DNA from: Dimorphilus gyrociliatus
Taxonomy: Eukaryota > Animalia > Annelida
Direction of reading: 5' to 3'
Assembly: GCA_904063045.1 (NCBI GenBank)
Contig: CAJFCJ010000007.1
Location: 2,363,404-2,427,403 of the forward strand
DNA: 64,000 nt
Below the pieces are notes generated by a model that ran no database searches, was not told where the DNA came from, and saw only the letters and a list, made by a program, of their open reading frames with translations. Positions 1-63,069 of the stretch are shown piece by piece. Numbering within the stretch: position 1 is the stretch's first letter; every line of letters begins with the position of its first letter. A program made the translations under genes and the position numbers.

Positions 1-534
1 TCCAGCTTGAATAAGCATATGAGGTTAGAAAAAAATTATAAGCTGTTTATGTGCCTTTAAAAGATTATAAAAAACAAACCCCACAAAAATAACATTCTAA
101 ACTAAACTAAAATAATGTCAAATAATAATAATAATAATAAAAAAATTAATATTTTAATTATTTTTTTTTTTAAAAAAAATATGAAATACAAAATTTTTTT
201 TTTTTTCAACTTTATCTTCCTGCTTTATTTTAATTTAGTTTGGATTGATAAAATTAGTTAGATAGTTAGAGAAAGAGAGAAAGAGAAGAGTTGTGTTTTT
301 TTTTGATTATTACTTCCGCTGTGAAACAGCTTGTCTGCTTTAATATTTTAATTTTTTTTGTTGTTGATAATTATAGATATTGTTAACTATTGTTTTCATT
401 GTTATTACTAATTTACCTGTTATCAATTAGGCCAGTCTGTGCATAGGATCACCCTTTGCCCCTATCTCCCACTCTTCCTACAAAAAAATTATTAATTTTT
501 TATAGCATATGCTGCTAATATCACAATGCTTTAT

Positions 535-559
535 TGTTTGTTTGTTTGTTTGTTTGTTT
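535..559. repeat. (TTTG)n microsatellite
   Basis: tgtttgtttgtttgtttgtttgttt read directly. Confidence 0.9.
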
Positions 560-853
560 CTGTTGTTATTGTTGTTTATCGTTTTTTAAAACTTTTTTTT
601 TGCTAATATTTTGCTGCTTTTTCAAAAAAAAATTGCTACTCCTACCGCCTAGCCCTCTTCAGTTTATCATTGTCCATCCTATCTTGTTTTTTTTTTACCG
701 CCATTCTTTACCAAACTTTTAACATATGCTTGTTTCTTTTTGTTTAAACTTATCAATTTCAATAGTGCTTTTCACAACCCTTACTTAATAATTACATGCA
801 ACATATGCATTAAATTAAGCGTATTTTTAAAAGATATATCGTTTTACAGGTCA

Positions 854-3800
854 ATGTCTGGTCCACAGTTTAATTTTTCCACCATCGCAAAAGCGAAAAA
901 GGAAGCTATCGTCGCTACGCCCGAGGAATATGTCAAACGATTCGGTGGTACTAGGGTTATATCAAAAATCCTAATTGCTAATAACGGTATTGCTGCCGTT
1001 AAGTGTATTAGATCGATCAGACGATGGTCCTACGAGATATTTCGCAATGAACGGGCCGTTAAATTTGTGGTTATGGTAACACCTGAAGATTTAAAGGCAA
1101 ATGCTGAATATATTCGTTTAGCCGATCAATATATCCCCGTTCCTGGCGGTACTAATAACAATAACTACGCAAATGTTGATCTTATCCTTGATATCGCTAA
1201 GAGGACAAAAGTTCAAGGCGTTTGGGCAGGTTGGGGTCATGCTTCCGAGTTTCCAAGACTACCTGAATCTTTACATCGTAACAATATTATATTTATCGGT
1301 CCACCTGAACATGCTATGTGGGCTCTAGGTGATAAGATAGCGAGCTCTATTGTCGCTCAAAGCTGCGGTGTTCCAACTCTGCCGTGGAACGGTAGTCATT
1401 TAAAAATAGAATATGACCTTGATCAGATAGCCAAAGGTGAAGTTGTCACGGTCCCTCAAGACATCTACACTCAAGGTTGCGTAGCTAACGTATCGGAAGG
1501 CCTAAAATCTGCCAAGGAAATAGGCTTCCCTGTAATGATAAAAGCCTCCGAAGGAGGTGGCGGCAAAGGAATTAGAAAAGTTAATCATGAAGATGATTTC
1601 CCTAATGCTTTCCGACAAGTTCAAACCGAAGTACCTGGATCCCCTATATTCATTATGCAACTGGCAAAGGGTTCACGACATTTGGAAGTTCAAGTTTTGG
1701 CCGATAAATACGGAAACGCCGTATCCTTGTTCGGAAGAGATTGCTCTATCCAAAGAAGACATCAGAAAATTATTGAGGAAGCCCCCATAACGATAGCACC
1801 CGAACATATTAGAACAAAAATGGAGAAAGCTGCCGTTACGCTGGCCAAATTGGTAGGCTATCAGTCGGCAGGAACTGTTGAATATTTGTATAATCCTACA
1901 GATGAATCTTTTCACTTTTTGGAATTGAATCCAAGACTTCAAGTAGAACATCCTTGTACTGAGATGGTATGTGATGTTAACTTACCATCTGCTATGCTGG
2001 AAGTTGGTATGGGTATACCATTGTGGAGAATTAAGACTATTAGAACTATGTACGGAGAAGATCCCATGGGAGATAGTAAAATCGACTTTGAGAATCCAGC
2101 ATATGAACCAAAGCCTAGAGGCCACGTTATCGCTTCTAGAATTACGTCCGAGAATCCGGACGAAGGATTTAAACCTAGTTCAGGAACAGTACAGGAATTG
2201 AATTTTAGAAGTTCGAAAAATGTTTGGGGCTATTTTAGCGTATCCGCAGCTGGTGGCCTTCACGAATTTGCCGATTCTCAATTCGGACATTGTTTCTCGT
2301 GGGGAGAAGACAGAAATTGCGCTAGAGAGAATATGGTTATTGCCCTAAAAGAACTATCGATTAGAGGTGATTTCAGAACAACTGTAGAATATTTGATTAC
2401 CCTCTTTGAAACGGAATGTTTCCAAAGAAATTCTATTGATACTGCATGGCTTGACAAGTTGATTGCCGAGAAAATTCAATCTGAAAAACCCGACCCACTT
2501 TTGGGTGTACTTTGCGGTGGATTACACGTTGCAGAGCAAACGATACTTGAGAATTTGCAAAATTTTCAATCAACACTTGAACGAGGCCAGATTCTACCTG
2601 CAAATTCTTTGAAAAATTCGTGCGAAGTTGAATTAATACACGAAGGCATAAAGTATAGAGCAGTCGTATCAAAATTAGGTCCAACAAGCTTTCTTATCCG
2701 CATGAATGATTCGTTTATTGAGGTTGACGCTCATCGTCTATCCGACGGTGGATTGTTAATATCTTTAGATGGTGACTCTCACACAACATATATGAAAGAG
2801 GAAGTTGGTGGTTATAGGGTTGTTATCGGAAATAAAACCTGTAATCTAGAGAAAGAAAACGATCCGGCTGCTCTACGCGCTCCATCCACTGGAAAATTAA
2901 TTAATTTCTTGGTTGAGGACGGCGCTCATATAGCGGCTGGTTCGGTTTATGCCGAAATAGAGGTCATGAAGATGATTATGGAATTAAGAGTTAACGAGAG
3001 CGGAGTAATTAATCATATTAAAAGATCTGGAGCAATTCTTGAAGCTGGCGACCTCGTTGCTCGCTTGGAACTCGACGATCCTTCAAGAGTTCAAAAGGCT
3101 ATCCCTTACCAGGGTAAATTGCCCGAAACAACTCATAATGGTAATGCTCATGGAGATAAACTTCATCAAATCTTTCAGAGATGTAAGCAAACGTTGATTA
3201 ACATATTGGATGGGTATTGCGAAGGAGAAGAACATTTCAAGAATCGAGTAAGAACAACAGTCGAAACTTTAATGAAATGCTTGAATGATCCGGCGCTACC
3301 ACTCCTGGAACTTCAAGAATTAGTTTCAGCAGTTTCTGGTCGTATTCCACCGGAAGTTGAAAGGGAAATAAAACAATCAATGGCTTCATACGCCTCGAAT
3401 ATAACGTCGATCCTATGTCAATTTCCTAGTCATTCAATCTCGAAATATATCGATTCTTATGCCGCTTCTATTCAAAGAAAAACCGAAAGAGACGTATATT
3501 TTATGACAGTTCAGGGAATTGTTCAACTGACCCAAAGATACTTGCACGGAACTCGTGGTCATATGAGGAACGTTGTTGCCGAATTAATTAAGAAATATGT
3601 AGATGTTGAAAAGCAATTTCAACATTTTCATTATGATAAGTGCGTTGCTCACATAAGAGATACGCACAAAAAGGATATGGCAGCCGTTTCAAGTGTTATT
3701 TTGTCGCATGCTCACGTTGCCGAAAAGAATACGCTTATTATTACATTGTTAGATCAGCTATTCGGCGGTGAGCGTGATTTTGGATTAACCGAGGATATGC

Positions 3801-6800
3801 AAAAACTTCTTACCGAATTAACAATGCTTAACAAGGTGGAAAATAGCAAAGTAGCCCTAAAAGCTCGTCAAATTTTGATAGCAGCTCACCAACCAGCTTA
3901 CGAATTAAGACATAACCAAGTAGAGAATATCTTCCTAAAAGCAATCGATACCTACGGACACGACATCAGCCCTGATAACTTGAAGGTAAGTTATCCTTTT
4001 ATACCCTTTTTGATCTATCCCTTTATCCATAAAATCATCATATACCAACAACAATATCATTTTTATATTTTATAAGTAAAACAATCAAAAATATCATGAA
4101 TTACTGTAGCAATTAATCAAAACCGAAACGCTTATATTCGACGTTCTTCACGATTTCTTCTTCTATTCGAATTTGGCCGTTCGTCGAGCGGCATTCGAGG
4201 TAATTATTGATTGAAAATTTTATATTTATGTTGCTTCAACAGAAATTAATTTTGTCCGAAACATCGATATACGACGTATTACCTGATTTCTTCTATCATA
4301 CTAACAAATTGGTTCGAATGGCTGCTTTAGAGGTGCGAGCAAAAACACAAACAAATAAAAGAAGTGTTACATATATATATATATATATTTTATATAAGCT
4401 ATATTTAATTTTGCTTTTAATCAGATAAAAAGCCTATCCAATATATATGCTTGATATATATATATACATACAATACATATATATATATATACCTAAACAA
4501 ATATAACGAGTGTGAAAGAAGTCTAATTTTTTTTATTTGAAAAAAAAATGGAGATTTTCTTCGATTTAAGAAAAATCATATCTTGTTTATGATTTCTTTA
4601 ATTTTTATTTACATGATTATTTCAATGTATATTTCTTATATTTAGGTCTATGTACGAAGAGCTTACATCGCTTACGATTTGAATTGTATTCAACACGATC
4701 TGTTGAAAGGAGATCTATGCATTGTTGAATTTCAATTTCTACTTCCGAGCTCCCATCCTAATCGTTTCCATCAGAGAAAAACTAGCTATATGCTACCTAG
4801 AGTATCGAGTTTAGGCGATGAAATGGCTGCCGTTGCCAATTATTTACCATGTCAGAGAACTGGAGTTATGGCTGCTTTTAGATGTTTCGACGAATTTGTG
4901 AGATATTTCGATGATCTTTTAAAAAGATTTGTGAAAACTAATAATTGTACAACAATGAATGGCGACGATGCATCACACCAATACGATAGTAGACGAAGTA
5001 GTTCTAGTTCTTTAGGAAGTGTCCTCGGTGATGATGAACCGATTCACATACTGAATATTGCTATATCTTGTAAACAGTAAGTTAACAAATCTTCTTTTTT
5101 TATTATTATCAATGATAATATCTACTATTGTTTTTATTTGTAGTGACGAAGAAGATAGAGAGTTAGCGGACAGATTTGAACAATTCTGTGTTCAACACAG
5201 GCCTGTTCTAAATGAACGTGGTATAAGGAGAGCAACATTTATTCTGCTTAAGAATAGAGAATTTCCAAAGTATTTCACCTTCCGCTCTAGGGAAGGATTC
5301 ACTGAGGATAGAATTTATAGACATCTTGAACCTGCTCTTGCATTCCAGCTGGAAATTAATCGAATGAGAAATTTTAATTTAGAAGCTATTCCAGTAGCAA
5401 ATCATAGAATACATTTGTACTTGGGAAGAGCAAAACAAGTAGCCAAAGGCCAAGAAGTTACTGATTATCGTTTTTTCGTTCGCGTAATTATCCGCCATTC
5501 TGATCTCGTATCGAGAGAAGCTTCGTTCGAATATTTAAGAAGTGAAGGTGAACGCATGTTATTGGAGGCTATGGACGCCTTAGAGGTAGCCTTCGAGCAT
5601 CCTCTTTCCAAGAGAACCGATTGCAATCACGTCTTTTTGAATTTCGTTCCAACTATGGTTATGGCAGATCCGATCAAAATTGAAGATACCGTTAGAAATA
5701 TGGTTATGTGTTACGGACACCGTATTTGGAAATTGCGAGTACTACAAGCAGAAGTTAAAATGAACGTTAAGAAGACGCAAGAGAGTGAACCAATGCCTAT
5801 TAGGGTGTTTGTTAATAACGATAGTGGATACTATTTGGATATTACTACCTACAAAGAAATCAACGATGGTAAAGGTGGACAAGTTCACTTTGAGAGTCTG
5901 GGAAAGAAGAAAGGACCTCTTCACGGTCTAATATTGTCTACACCATATATGACAAAGGATCAATTACAATTGAAACGTTTCCAAGCACAAAGTGCCGGTA
6001 CAACGTACGCCTACGATCTGCCAGAATTGTTTAAGCAAGCACTAGTAAAACTCTGGAAGAAATACTACGCAAGTAAAGGTGAAGCTGAAGAAAACTTTCA
6101 AAATACCGAATTAGATTGTTTCTCTTTTGTTGAATTGGTAATTGGTCAAGACGGAAAACTAAAAGAATTTAATAGATTACAAGGCGAGAATGATTGCGGA
6201 ATGGTTGCTTGGAAATTCACCTTGAAAACTCCAGAATTTCCAAACGGTAGAAGTGCCATTGTTATAGCTAATGATATAACATTCCAAATTGGTTCTTTTG
6301 GACCAAAAGAAGACGATCTGTTTTTGAAGGCAAGCGAATTGGCTAGAGCCGAAGGAATCCCTCGCATATACGTGTCTGCTAACAGTGGAGCCAGAATTGG
6401 CTTGGCTAAAGAGATAATGCATCACTTCCGAGTGGCTTGGAAAGATGATAAGGATGTCGAGAAGGGATTTAATTATTTGTATTTGACTCCCGACGATTAT
6501 AAAAAGGTCATGTCGAGTGTTCACGTTGAGCATGTCGTGGAGAAGGGTGAATCCCGCTATAAGCTTCTCGATATTATCGGCGCTGAAGATGGTTTAGGCG
6601 TTGAAAATTTACGTGGCTCCGGTACTATTGCTGGGGAAACTTCCCAAGCTTACAATGAAATTCCAACTATTTCCTTGGTTACTTGCCGTGCTGTTGGTAT
6701 TGGTGCTTATTTGGTTCGTCTTGGTCAGAGAGTGGTTCAAACTGAAAATGCCCATATTATTCTTACTGGAGCGGGCGCTCTCAATAAGGTTTTGGGAAGA

Positions 6801-57723: not shown

Positions 57724-60700
57724 ATGATCAGTTATTTATACAGTATGCTTAGTTATTAATTAATTTTTCATTGTTTTATATATATAATATATATATATAT
57801 ATATTGATTTTTTTAAACAGTTTTCCTACTTTTATTTACTTACACTTTACAAGAAGAAACAGCGTTTAATGAGTATGATAGAAAGAGGATAAAATGTAGA
57901 TCGGGTTTCATGAAAAACTTTGATTCGGATAAAATTTATAAGAAAGCTTTGGGTAAAAAGTTTCAGCATCTTCTTTTTTCTTTCTTAAATCATCGTTCCT
58001 TTTCTTTTACTACTAGTTAAACTTGTTGAAAAAAAAAAAACACTTGGTAGGAATGTTCGCATAGAGAATCTCTATTTAGGTTGTAGATCAGATGAAAAAG
58101 GACGTATTTATTGGAATGGTGGCGTGATAAACTCACCTCATAATCTTGGTGAGGTAAAAGAACAATACCTGTTAAAGACCGTTCGCCAATGTAAATATAT
58201 ATATATGTATTGTATATTTACATCAATTAATATTTAAAAATAGAATGCGTATTGTTATCTAGGGTCTTCACAAAAAAGGAAAAACAAGTGCTGTTTCTTA
58301 AAGGCTTTTGGGTCCGAATTTGGTAAAATTGGTCTAGACAACTGCAATAACAAGCGAGCAGGAACTTTCTGCAAGTTTTTCACTCATTTCTCTATTAATA
58401 GAACTATCTAATTTACCATTCAATTAATTAAAGGTGTTAAATCTAAATCGGCAGAAGAGAAGTTATTGCAAAATCTAATAGTAAAAAAACAGAATAAAAA
58501 GCCTAATAGACCAATTCTGTTAATAGAAAGACCAGGAAATATGATTGTAACGGAAAAACCAATAGGCGAAATGAGAGTTACTGAAAAACCAAAAATTTCC
58601 CGTTACGTTCCTGATCCAACAATATCCAGTCCATTCGGTATAGATAACAATAAAAAATTGATAATTGCAAACAAAACAAACTACTTATAATAGAGTTTGT
58701 AATTATTTATTGAAATCAGCGTAATATACTTCTCCCTCCTATAGAATTAACAATAGAGGAAGCAGCTAAATGCGACTTTGAAAAGGGCGGAAAGAAACGC
58801 TTCTGCTACTACAAAATTCCCAAAAAGAATGTTTACAAGTAATAAATTATAAAATAAAAGATTAAAGAAATCTACAGATTTAATTATAATATTAATTGCA
58901 TTGAAACGTAATTATAAGGTTTCAAAGAAAACTTCGGAAAGAGTATGGAATAATTGAAAACAGTAATTATCCTCTTTTATTTTTCTTCTTGCTATACGGT
59001 ATATAGAAAGAAAATTCTTAAATGAAAATTTGTGCCGTTTTAGAATATACCGCTTCAACAAGGCCTAACTTATTTGGTACTTACAAACTGGAAACTGTAG
59101 AATTTAAACCAACGAAAGAGGATGGATGTTTAACATTTTCTTACTACATCACTGGAAAGGAATGCGAAATATCAGTTTACAATTGGTGAAAATGAACTTT
59201 TTTTTATACTTTGTTTATATAAAATTAATAATTATTTGAGTAATGATTAAATGAAAATATTGTTTCATGGGGAAAAAAAAGGGATCAAATTAAGGAAGGT
59301 TATCAAATTGTAGCATCTTTTAATGAAAGCAGTGCAGGGAAATGGAAAAAATATCATTTGATGATTCGTCAAAATGTAATTAAAGTAAGCGAAAAGTAAT
59401 TTTGTTAAAAATTTCAAAAGATTCCTTTTATTAATCGTATTCCTTAACTTTGCTAATTAGATCAAATTCCAAATTCGAACATCTATGGGATACGTTCAAC
59501 TAGATGATATTAATTATAGGAACAGTTGTAGTCCAACTTCTATGCTTGTTTGCGAATTTGATTCCCCCTTCAGAGAGTTAGGCCTTTGCTCTCTCAAAGC
59601 TGGAACGATTTATGGAGGATACGTGTTTAAGAGATCGCATGGGCATTGGAGTATAACTAGATCGAAATACTACGATACTGGTCCGGCTAAAGATCATACA
59701 CTCAATAGTTACGAAGGAGGCTTTGCTATGGCGGATGCAACTTCAGGATTTCGTGGAAGTGTTACATATCTTATATCACCAATCTTTACGCCCGTAGGGC
59801 AACAAGGCGGCTGTCTGTCTTTCTATCTTTTTACTGATAATCAAGAAAAAAAGATTCCAACAACCTTGACCTTAATGGTCAGAATAGGTCTAGACGCTGA
59901 ATTTAAAAAACTATGGGGAACTAAAAGAATTACTATGAAATGGGAAAAGCGTCAAATAAGGATAAACCCCGACACTATTCAGGTATGATTTAACACTTAT
60001 TATATTAATGGTCTAACGCCTTTCCATTTCCGTCTTCGTCCATCGTAACTAAGCAATTAAATTGTCTTGTGTGTTTACAATCGTTTTCATTTTATTACAA
60101 AATAGAATAGGAATAGCAGTGTCATTTTTGAGTATCGTTAGAAATACCATATAAAAGCTTGACGTATCCCATTTCGTTGTCATTCCGTGTCCTCTGAGAT
60201 TGTGGATAAGATGGAAAGCGTATCGCCCATAGACTACTCTTTAAAACGAAATTGTGAAAATTTAGAAAAGAAAACGAGAAAGAATAAATCGTACCATAGA
60301 ATTAGTGACGAAAACAAGAATAAACTTGAGGAAACTTTTGAAAAGTCACCGTTTCCAACGGCTAAAGTTATGACTAGTTTAGCGGATCAACTCGGATTGA
60401 AGTATAGTTGCGTTAGAGGTTGGTTCAAGAGAAGAAGAAGGTTTCTCAGACAATTGACGACGAATAAGCAAACTAATAAAGATAAGAAATCTAATAAGAA
60501 GACCTTGTCTATTGATGTTATACCGAGTTTCAACGAAGTTCTTGAAAGCTTAGAACCTTTGAATAATAACGATATCCATTTTACTACGCCTACTCAACCA
60601 GAAATAATGAACAACGTTAATCTAACAGAATCCTATTATCCGGAAATTTATCCGCCTTTCGAAGATCAGTACTTTCATCAACCTGTACAACAGCTGCAGC

Positions 60701-63069
60701 AACAACAGCCACAACAACAACAACAACATTATCAGCAAACATCGAATTCTTTTGATATTTCGCCTCGTTGTTGTCATTGCTTCTGTCATAACAATGTACA
60801 ATTTAGCTACAATGAATATTATTGATTGTTTAGTTTTGTTACGTTAATCCTAAAGACTTTGTTTCATTACTTCTTTATTCTTTTTAAACAGATAAAATTT
60901 ATAGTCTCTAGAGGAAATAATCATTATTCTCACGTATCGATCGACGACTTGTCCTATTCCGACGGTTATTGCGCCATCGGCACAACAATTAGACCCATTA
61001 CCCCGCTTAAAACAACAGCTAAAACAAATACATTTCCATCTAGGCCTAGTGAAACTACTATGAAAACTACACCAACACCAACTACTACTATTCGCATTAT
61101 ATCGAAATTCGACCAATCTGACGAATGGAGTGCTTGGAGTTCTTGTACAGCTACATGTGGAACAGATGTATACATTTAATCAAATATTATAGAAAATATA
61201 ATGCTAGATTTGACCTAATCTATTTCTTTTCTAAATGAAAAAGGCAACACAAATTCGTTATAGAAAAAAATGCTTAGAGAAATCATCGTGTTCAAAAGAT
61301 TCATCGGAAAAGAGAAATTGTAATTTATTGTCTTGTTCAGGTTTGAAAAATTCACTATCTTCTTTATTTCATTATTTAGTTATAAAAAGGGTCGATCCTT
61401 TATTAATTCATTGCCTTTCATTCCTTTAATTTTAATCGTTTGTTATCTGTTAAAAGAACAAAAACTTGTACCTGACGATATTTTTCGGTATTGTTCGAAA
61501 CATGGTAGTCTATGCTTTGAAGAGAAAGTCGGTCTTAACAGTTATAAACTATGCATTGATTCCGATAATCCTGTGTGTTCTATGCAATATTGTACGAATA
61601 TGGAGAATTACGTTCCGGGGCGTGGTTGTATTCGTAAGTTTATTATAACTATATTAATAGCCCATCGTACTGCATTGATTGAAAAATGATAAAACCAAGA
61701 AAATTTTACTGCAGATTCGTTTATCGTCTACTGTGTAAATAACGGGGGGGAATGCAGAGTAAGGAGTAGCTCGTTTCCGTACAAAAGTAGCCTGTGCTCA
61801 CCAACGAAGGGCACTGTTGAAAATTGCATTGACTTTTGTCAAGAAACGAAAAAAGAGGCTCATTGTGTAGGTTTGTAAAAATAAAAAGGGTATAGGCAAT
61901 AATTAGATATCGATTTAAGATATAAAATCTAAGACTTAAAAACTCTTTATATATTAGAATATATAGTAGTATATACTGTATATCATATCATAAAAAATGC
62001 ACAGATAAATCGGAATATGTCTATCATTTTTGTAATAAGAAGAAGAACTCTTCCGAGATCAAGTGCTTTACTAAAATCGACCATGAATCAGAAGACGAGC
62101 GAGCGTATTATGTGTGTATTAAACACCTAAGGGACAATTGGAAGAACGAGTGCTTCCCCAGGCGTTGTGAATACGATTATTTTTTCGACAAGGAATCGAA
62201 TGAATGTAAACATATAGGTATTTACCTAAATAATAAGAAGGATTAAGATGAAAAGAATGTTCTATAAGGAATTTTGATTTCTTTATTAAAAACAAATTAT
62301 TTGCGGTACTTTTAGGTTATTCTTATTGCTCTTTGGAACCAAATAAGTGCACAGCTAAAAAATCAGCAAAGGGCAGACAATTTTACAAATTATGCATTCC
62401 GAAAGACGCCGACTATGAGTACAGAGGCCAATGCATGCTAAAACGCTGCCCCGGAACGCAATTATTCCTCGAAGATGCTCGATCTTGTAGCGATTGTAAG
62501 TGGGAGTGCTAAAAATAGTTTATTACTCATTTGTACCCTTATTTTACATATATACACTGAATTTAAAGCGTATTTTCTTTTCTTTTTAGATATGGACGAT
62601 TGTGTATCATGGTGTCGAGATAGGGGTGACTGCTCTTTTCGTCCACTTACTAATAAGCGTTCATTTGAAGTCTGTTCACCACAACTTCGTGCCGAGTCCA
62701 AAGTCAACATAGGCTGTATAAAGTGTCGTTGTCCAGAAACTAGTCCAATATTTTCTTCGAAAAGCTTTGCCAATTGTCTCCCGATAGGTAAACCAACTAT
62801 TGCTTCTTCAATTGGTCTCATGAATTATTATGTAACAGATAAAATAGTTTTTTCCTTTTCTTCCTTCTTTCATAAAACGCCGTTTTTTTCTATTGTTTTC
62901 CTATAATATAGCAAAAGAGTGCAAATCTGGCGAATTTAAGTACCTAACAGTTGAATCATCATCCTCTTCGGCGAACTCTATCGAAGTTTACAAATGTGAC
63001 AATTCCATTAGTCAATGTTACCTAGAATTGACTACTGCTTTACCGTCCAAATGTAATTTTTTGGCATAA
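57724..63069 (+). CDS. Secreted mosaic protein: signal peptide, C-type-lectin-like Cys domain, TEKP linker, 2 x MAM, Thr-rich stalk, TSP1, five to six six-Cys repeats
   Basis: Spliced signal peptide MISYLYIFLLLFTYTLQ; MAM1 CDFEKGG...CLTFSYY...VQLDDI; MAM2 CEFDS...LISP....GCLSFYL...VSIDDL; TSP1 WSAWSSCTATCG...RYR..C; 3' exons each encode one Cys-rich module; stop 63067-63069. Confidence 0.8.
60150..60186 (+). promoter_or_regulatory. TATA box plus initiator of the nested homeobox gene
   Basis: TATAAAAG 60150-60157 and TCATTC (TCAKTY-type Inr, A at 60182), 32 nt apart; first ATG at 60211. Confidence 0.6.
60211..60825 (+). CDS. Intronless divergent homeodomain protein (204 aa) nested in an intron of the MAM gene
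   Basis: 60-aa homeodomain 60280-60459 with L16, F20, P26, L34, A35, L38, L40, V45, W48, F49, R53; N-terminal PIDYSLK; Gln/Pro-rich C-terminus; lies wholly within intron 59983-60891. Confidence 0.88.
   Translation: MESVSPIDYSLKRNCENLEKKTRKNKSYHRISDENKNKLEETFEKSPFPTAKVMTSLADQLGLKYSCVRGWFKRRRRFLRQLTTNKQTNKDKKSNKKTLSIDVIPSFNEVLESLEPLNNNDIHFTTPTQPEIMNNVNLTESYYPEIYPPFEDQYFHQPVQQLQQQQPQQQQQHYQQTSNSFDISPRCCHCFCHNNVQFSYNEYY

Follow-up and report, generated by a model that had tools for sequence, protein, structure and literature searches.

A homeobox gene in an intron of a MAM/TSP1 gene

The window analyzed here is a stretch of 64,000 nucleotides (nt) of the annelid Dimorphilus gyrociliatus (contig CAJFCJ010000007.1, positions 2,363,404 to 2,427,403 of the forward strand), and all positions below are counted from its first letter. 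Its + strand carries a gene for an extracellular protein with several MAM domains and a TSP1 repeat, here called the host gene, and one intron of the host gene holds an intronless open reading frame (ORF) for a homeodomain protein, here called the nested gene. An earlier note, made from the sequence without database searches, had described this ORF as a complete homeobox gene on the same strand as a host whose MAM domain it interrupts. That description agrees with the RNA confined to the ORF, with a Pfam homeodomain match and with strong purifying selection, and we consider it likely that the ORF is a genuine protein-coding gene of one exon that has its own transcription and lies entirely within one host intron. 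The positions given in the earlier note for the exon end, the 909-nt intron, TATAAAAG at 60150, TCATTC, the ATG at 60211 and the 66-nt spacer before the host acceptor are all correct on the sequence, and the splice is present in an RNA contig.

The domains of the host were searched exon by exon on the + strand. The exon upstream of the 909-nt intron matches the Pfam MAM profile (PF00629) over positions 15-124 of 158 (E 1.6e-11) and ends in ...DTIQ, with CAG at 59982; the next exon resumes from 60892 with IKFIVSRG...VSIDDL. This tail of 27 amino acids (aa) aligns with MAM tails of the same genome that Pfam recognizes at profile positions ~123-158, sharing with them F, RG, I-D-D, and G-x-C. On its own it is too short to score and gave no match against PDB or to a genome-wide MAM profile. 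The TSP_1 match in the exon that follows the intron is weak (E 0.018, or E 0.0052 with a slightly longer translation of the exon). Excision of the intron was seen directly in a 1725-nt RNA contig of data set X2, which joins 59979>60889 (cut +3) with GT..AG ends and thereby removes exactly 909 nt, the whole intron, as a single unit. As the remaining host introns in X2 measure 63-134 nt, the intron is ~11 times the local norm, in line with the more than tenfold difference that had been noticed.

Table 1. Features of the nested gene and of the surrounding host gene, in window coordinates
Feature	Position	Strand	Details
Paralogous "empty" intron in MAM domain 1 of the same gene	59385..59460	+	76 nt; joint 59384>59461, GT..AG
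Host exon	59461..59982	+	Tail of MAM domain 1 (IKFQIRTS...LDDINYRNSC), then main body of MAM domain 2, ending ...INPDTIQ; inside the 1725-nt spliced X2 contig
Host intron carrying the nested gene	59983..60891	+	909 nt, GTATGA...AAACAG, phase 0; RNA-contig joint; 951 nt in the relative
Conserved non-coding element	59987..60130		Cores 59987-60037 (49/51 identical) and 60052-60089 (36/38 identical) against the relative; single-copy
TATA-like box TATAAAAG	60150..60157	+	Read from the sequence; the relative has TTTAAAAG
Initiator-like TCATTCC (TCATTC at 60180-60185)	60180..60186	+	Predicted +1 A at 60182; CCATTG in the relative
Nested intronless coding sequence	60211..60825	+	204 aa and TGA (60823-60825); ORF list, ortholog P0001, dN/dS, RNA contigs
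Homeodomain	60280..60459	+	Residues 24-83; Pfam PF00046, E 6.2e-10
Conserved acidic/hydrophobic motif	60508..60576	+	Residues 100-122; DVIPSFNEVLESLEPLNNND at 102-121; 21/23 residues identical in the relative
Conserved Cys/His-rich C-terminus, RCCHCxCHNNVxFSYNEYY	60766..60822	+	17/19 residues identical in the relative; low AlphaFold2 confidence
3' untranslated region and spacer to the host acceptor	60826..60891	+	40% identity to the relative, counting gaps; RNA contig cover ends at 60854
Host exon	60892..61167	+	Probable tail of MAM domain 2 IKFIVSRGNNHYSHVSIDDLSYSDGYC, Thr/Pro-rich linker, start of TSP1 repeat WSAWSSCTATCG; inside the spliced contig

RNA confined to the nested ORF

RNA evidence was taken from Logan contigs, which do not show strand, 5' or 3' ends, or expression level. 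Within the intron, X2 contains two contigs (60210-60434 and 60444-60854), both aligned over their full length, and the depth bins of the same data set show zero cover over 59983-60209 and over 60855-60869. The intronic RNA thus amounts to the ORF plus 29 nt past its stop. Neither a retained intron nor a lariat nor DNA contamination would be expected to leave such a pattern. The 9-nt interval separating the two X2 contigs is bridged by a 242-nt contig (60426-60667) from a second data set, X1, an RNA library from a coral metagenome; it differs from the window once, by a synonymous T>C at 60591 (CCT to CCC). No host-exon contig was found in X1 across the 5.7 kb examined, and none of the RNA contigs links the ORF to any host exon. 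The earlier note had asked whether the ORF might lack an independent transcription start or transcript; RNA contigs that keep to the ORF speak for a transcript of its own.

Conservation of the nested gene in a relative

A word search returned one homolog, the 209-aa protein P0001, which is 75% identical to the nested gene product according to BLASTP and 78% according to phmmer and MAFFT. It is encoded on three contigs, identical over the locus, from runs SRR23372228, SRR23372229, and SRR31984834, in which a MAM exon, the homeobox ORF, and the next host exon follow one another on one strand, the intron being 951 nt long with GT..AG ends. Over 201 codons of the nested ORF, the Nei-Gojobori method gave proportions of synonymous (pS) and nonsynonymous (pN) differences of 0.65 and 0.12 and an omega (dN/dS) of 0.085 (Fisher test against equal rates, P 2e-29), with lower regional values for the homeodomain (0.025) and for the motif at residues 100-122 (0.023). 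The absence of purifying selection, named in the earlier note as a reason to give up the gene, is thus contradicted. Because the host exons show an omega of 0.13 (pS 0.50), the comparison indicates that the nested gene is constrained at least as much as its host. Several insertions or deletions separate the two ORFs, all of them multiples of three, and the frame is intact in both species. The start codon has shifted by three codons with the frame kept (GTG...ATG in the window, ATG...AGT in the relative); in both species, it lies in a good Kozak context with A at -3 and G at +4. With 50-65% of synonymous sites changed, close to saturation, the sequences indicate that the nesting is older than the split from the relative.

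A conserved element and a candidate promoter upstream of the ORF

The 5' part of the intron, from the donor to the TATA-like box (59983-60149, 167 nt), is 79% identical to the relative with 5 gap columns. For comparison, identity is 30-72% in ten other host introns, whose alignments have many gaps, and 35-50% at synonymous sites. The conserved element in this part, which starts 4 nt inside the host intron, matches the genome of D. gyrociliatus at one place only, which rules out a repeat; it shows no conserved ORF, no RNA cover, and no credible Rfam match in a scan of 59900-60950. Downstream of it, identity between the species drops to 52% over the interval between the TATA-like box and the ATG (60150-60210); the first base of the TATA-like box and the A of the initiator are 32 nt apart in both, and the predicted 5' untranslated region has no upstream ATG in either. 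The conserved TATA/initiator pair supports a transcription start belonging to the nested gene itself.

We read the element as the probable proximal regulatory region of the nested gene. A role in host splicing is also conceivable, because the element starts 4 nt into the intron of a genome tuned to short introns. The published assembly of D. gyrociliatus spans ~78 Mb in ~350 scaffolds, and its median intron measures 66 bp (PMC7854359). Cap analysis of gene expression (CAGE) and assay for transposase-accessible chromatin (ATAC) data have been reported for the species, with ATAC peaks falling in unusually large introns (PMC7854359). Such data bear directly on this locus and make the promoter prediction directly testable with public data.

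A homeodomain without Arg5 and Asn51

Residues 26-76 of the nested gene product align without gaps with positions 2-52 of the Pfam Homeodomain profile (39.2 bits versus a cut-off of 22.9), and homeodomain positions are given here as residue number minus 23 on the basis of this alignment. AlphaFold2 models residues 31-85 at a predicted local distance difference test score of 83-90, with helices at 33-45, 51-61, and 65-84 and low confidence for the remainder. The PDB matches listed by Foldseek are all homeodomains, single-homeodomain chains among them reaching template modeling (TM) scores of 0.8-0.93 at root mean square deviations of 0.5-2 Å. Core residues L16, F20, W48, F49, and R53 (L39, F43, W71, F72, and R76 of the protein) are kept and are invariant in the relative, and the basic N-terminal arm is kept as K-K-T-R-K-N-K.

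Asn51 of homeodomains contacts adenine in the major groove, and Arg5 in the N-terminal arm contacts the minor groove. Both are absent here: the near-invariant Asn51 is Arg in both species (WFKRRRR versus WFQNRR, with WFKRRR in the PDB alignment), and position 5 is Tyr in both (K-S-Y-H/Q-R-I). Other contact positions hold Gly47 and Lys50, and helix 3 is very basic (K50 R51 R52 R53 R54), all identical in the relative. Arg3, Arg5, Ile47, Gln50, and Asn51 are homeodomain DNA contacts whose mutation abolishes DNA binding in Ubx (PMC4705621), and at three of these five positions the nested homeodomain departs from the classical state (Tyr5, Gly47, and Arg51). Canonical TAAT binding appears doubtful because Arg5 and Asn51 are missing. 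Most likely, the product would be a regulator that binds nucleic acids and whose specificity is not for TAAT.

A possible alternative, which concerns function only and to which we give clearly less credence, is that the homeodomain has lost sequence-specific DNA binding and serves to bind RNA or as a protein-interaction module. Bicoid has an Arg-rich helix 3 with K50 and R54 and binds RNA, and HOPX is a protein-interaction module; these parallels are a lead and not a test. Such a loss would fit the replacement of three classical contacts, the unbroken basic run of helix 3, the same residue states in the relative under an omega of 0.025, and the effect of contact-residue mutations in Ubx, but the fold, W48, F49, R53, and the basic arm have all been kept, and DNA binding, if with a changed specificity, persists in many divergent homeodomains.

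Outside the homeodomain, the conserved motifs at residues 100-122 and 186-204 may serve as partner-binding or effector modules, and the Cys/His-rich C-terminus possibly binds metal. A PIDYS motif near the N-terminus (window 60229-60243, region of residues 7-11) is conserved in both species; with Tyr in place of Leu/Met, we presume that it is not a canonical CtBP-type PxDLS motif.

Relatives and origin of the nested gene

The search for related genes covered 1.84 billion representative proteins and the genome of D. gyrociliatus itself (77,897,245 bases in 349 contigs). In the protein set, phmmer returned 183 matches at E<=1e-3 that, apart from the ortholog, cover the homeodomain only, with 23-41% of residues identical; many of these proteins contain several homeodomains, and their score is a sum over the repeats. 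The top matches of this kind (a merged DUX-like array in a sheep assembly, stick-insect proteins, and metagenome contigs) were considered and rejected as orthologs. Among PDB sequences, DUX4, POU, and PRD homeodomains match best (E values from 4e-7 upward). Within the genome itself, the best matches are to a PRD-class gene of the ordinary kind, to a POU gene, and to a gene of the K50 PRD-like type (L004, 33%), at 33-36% identity and in the homeodomain only. No other homeodomain with WFKRRR was found in the genome, where the pattern occurs five times versus seven in a control and falls within a homeodomain only at the nested locus. Further relatives were absent from a scan of JGI metagenomes, and the ESM Atlas gave only generic homeodomain clusters, all scoring <0.9. 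Orthology to Otx, Pitx, or Gsc was also rejected, as no full-length relative in those families and no shared class motifs were found. As far as sampled, the nested gene appears to be single-copy, unclassified, and lineage-restricted.

The lack of introns had been taken in the earlier note to suggest retroposition or a young, lineage-specific homeobox gene. Retroposition appears unsupported: no parent gene was found, with no paralog in the genome above 36% identity in the homeodomain, and other homeobox genes of this genome are also single-ORF. The nested gene also has a putative TATA/initiator pair of its own and the conserved element upstream. Flanking direct repeats and an A-tract or poly(A) remnant are likewise missing around the nested gene, which is weak evidence since they could have decayed at this age; the search for direct repeats, and for inverted repeats bridging the splice sites, gave only short chance-level pairs. 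Of the second suggestion, lineage restriction is consistent with the single ortholog found, but youth is not: because the nesting arose before a split since which synonymous sites have become nearly saturated, the gene appears to be lineage-restricted and not young.

Origin of the enlarged intron

MAM domain 1 of the host contains an intron at the equivalent place (Table 1), where ...HLMIRQNVIK / IKFQIRTS... parallels ...QIRINPDTIQ / IKFIVSRG... of MAM domain 2; at 76 nt, it provides an internal control within the same gene. In a six-frame profile search of the genome, the match of many MAM domains stops at profile positions ~124-131, where the 909-nt intron also lies, and is taken up again at ~123-130 after some 70-80 nt. 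Because so many MAM domains are split there by short introns, as is MAM domain 1, the intron position is probably old and its short form usual. An old MAM-domain intron, normally ~70-80 nt, would then have grown when a homeobox gene and its promoter came to sit inside, and the MAM domain 2 intron would be long because the homeobox gene and the upstream element lie in it. No "empty" orthologous intron was found in more distant species, word searches with two host exons having returned the same relative or nothing.

Separately, MAM domains are massively expanded in this genome, with at least 136 six-frame matches, many of them in tandem arrays (e.g., C14:267-292 kb, C25:1.02-1.05 Mb, and C11:1.06 Mb).

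Other features of the host gene

At the start of the host, an X2 contig runs from 57950 via two short introns (one of them, 58371-58433, GC..AG) into the MAM domain 1 exons. All three frames of exon 58434-58838 contain stops; 57950-58838 is either a small upstream gene abutting the host 5' end or contains an unrecognized intron. Farther downstream, host exons 62003-62214 (and also 61455-61868) are conserved at the DNA level against the relative far above the other exons. Measured over 40 nt, identity reaches 0.98-1.0 over ~62080-62200, and pS falls to 0.23 versus 0.5-0.69 elsewhere in the host gene, which suggests extra constraint at the nucleotide level at 62003-62214. An Rfam scan of these conserved exons (61400-62600) gave nothing credible. 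Upstream of the host, on the opposite strand, the relative's contig L005 carries at 1-5400 a concentrative nucleoside transporter gene (Pfam Nucleos_tra2, Gate), comparable to the minus strand of the window upstream of ~56500; synteny around the host seems to be kept.

Proposed arrangement and its alternatives

We propose that transcription of the nested gene starts near 60182, from a TATA/initiator core promoter that would be driven by the conserved upstream element, and terminates, with no canonical AATAAA signal, in the 66-nt stretch ahead of the host acceptor. The product would be a nuclear homeodomain protein from an unclassified family restricted to the lineage. Several points weigh against this proposal. 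The RNA evidence is at contig level only, and holes in contig cover prove nothing; the run type of X2 is not on record, and we take it as a transcriptome because its contigs are spliced. Since the contigs do not show ends, both the start of transcription and the poly(A) site are predictions. By itself, TATAAAAG is about as frequent as chance predicts for this AT-rich window (14 copies versus 10.5 expected), and the promoter case rests on position and conservation. Conservation itself was assessed in a single pairwise comparison with one other species, and with Tyr5 and Arg51, DNA binding as such is uncertain.

If the nested unit had no efficient terminator, a substantial share of its transcripts would read through the host acceptor or compete with host splicing, an outcome raised in the earlier note that we regard as unlikely. 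As that note had stated, AATAAA is missing between the nested stop and the host acceptor (60826-60891); ATTAAA is missing as well, and the relative has neither. Only 66 nt (103 nt in the relative) lie between the nested stop and the acceptor, and interference, exonization, and cryptic polyadenylation are known effects of nested genes (PMC3192792). Despite this, the X2 contig over the ORF stops at 60854 and does not enter 60855-60891 or the next exon, no joint leads from 60210-60854 to host exons, and the contig of the host shows clean splicing at a higher depth. These observations speak against a transcript running into the host 3' exons, although, being drawn from contigs, they are not proof.

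Slightly more doubtful than read-through is a broader reading in which the locus would hold a new homeodomain family lacking the Arg5 and Asn51 contacts under very strong constraint and acting through an Arg-rich, Bicoid-like helix 3 (K50, R54), as an RNA-binding or translational regulator or with an entirely new DNA specificity, together with an element coupling the two genes, as an enhancer of the nested promoter and as a splicing aid for an intron eleven times the size to which the spliceosome of this genome is tuned, with promoter firing and productive host splicing as alternatives.

Very improbable is that the ORF forms an alternative host exon, spliced in frame from the donor at 59982 to an AG at 60209-60210 to yield a MAM-homeodomain fusion with no separate gene. 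That AG lies directly before the ATG and in phase with the phase-0 donor, and one X2 contig begins at 60210, but this contig is fully aligned with no extra 5' letters, no such joint was reported, and the AG follows a weak polypyrimidine tract. The relative has its ATG upstream of the aligned AG, where splicing would be out of frame, and the fusion of a secreted MAM protein with a nuclear homeodomain would make no biological sense. Finally, a decaying retrocopy or functionless chance ORF whose RNA is noise, DNA contamination, or intron remains would suit an intronless, nested ORF that lacks Asn51 and has relatives known in one species only, but it is effectively refuted by the omega and its test against neutrality, by the frame kept through every insertion or deletion, by RNA over the ORF and not over neighboring intron, and by the conserved upstream DNA.

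Comparison with known nested genes and divergent homeodomains

Among human nested genes, ~63% lie on the opposite strand from their host, ~37% on the same strand, and 41% are single-exon (PMC3192792). The earlier note was thus right that same-strand nesting is the rarer arrangement, but at such a share the point carries little weight, and a same-strand, single-exon nested gene is a minority case and an ordinary one. The D. gyrociliatus locus resembles the host/nested gene pairs of the human survey (PMC3192792) in that a single-exon gene, apparently with its own expression, sits in one intron that is spliced as a whole. It differs from them in its compact genome, with a median intron of ~66-80 nt, where the nested gene and its putative promoter nearly fill an intron that apparently splits a protein domain, in its same-strand minority state, and in an arrangement conserved across a deep species split. 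The locus would be a compact, well-defined example, in a 78-Mb animal genome, of a developmental-type regulator that keeps its promoter and cis-element inside another gene.

With the "novel" lophotrochozoan homeobox genes (Paps et al. 2015, PMC5322547; Barton-Owen et al. 2018, PMC6118893), the nested gene shares a position outside the ancient bilaterian families, strong divergence, and restriction to one spiralian lineage, a placement made by category and not by phylogeny with those sets. Unlike them, it lacks Arg5 and Asn51 and has conserved C-terminal motifs of its own. Lys50 and the F-E-K-x-P-[FY]-P helix-1/loop motif recall K50 PRD-like homeodomains (Otx, Pitx, Gsc, and Bicoid-type) and DUX4. 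From these, the nested homeodomain is set apart by an identity of ~30-36%, by Arg51 in place of Asn, Tyr5 in place of Arg, and Gly47, and by having no OAR, eh1, or other class motifs. What goes beyond the ordinary is the loss of Arg5 and Asn51 under strong constraint, together with a conserved element abutting the host donor, and the protein offers a natural experiment in which a homeodomain has been held under strong purifying selection without the two most conserved base-contact residues of its class.

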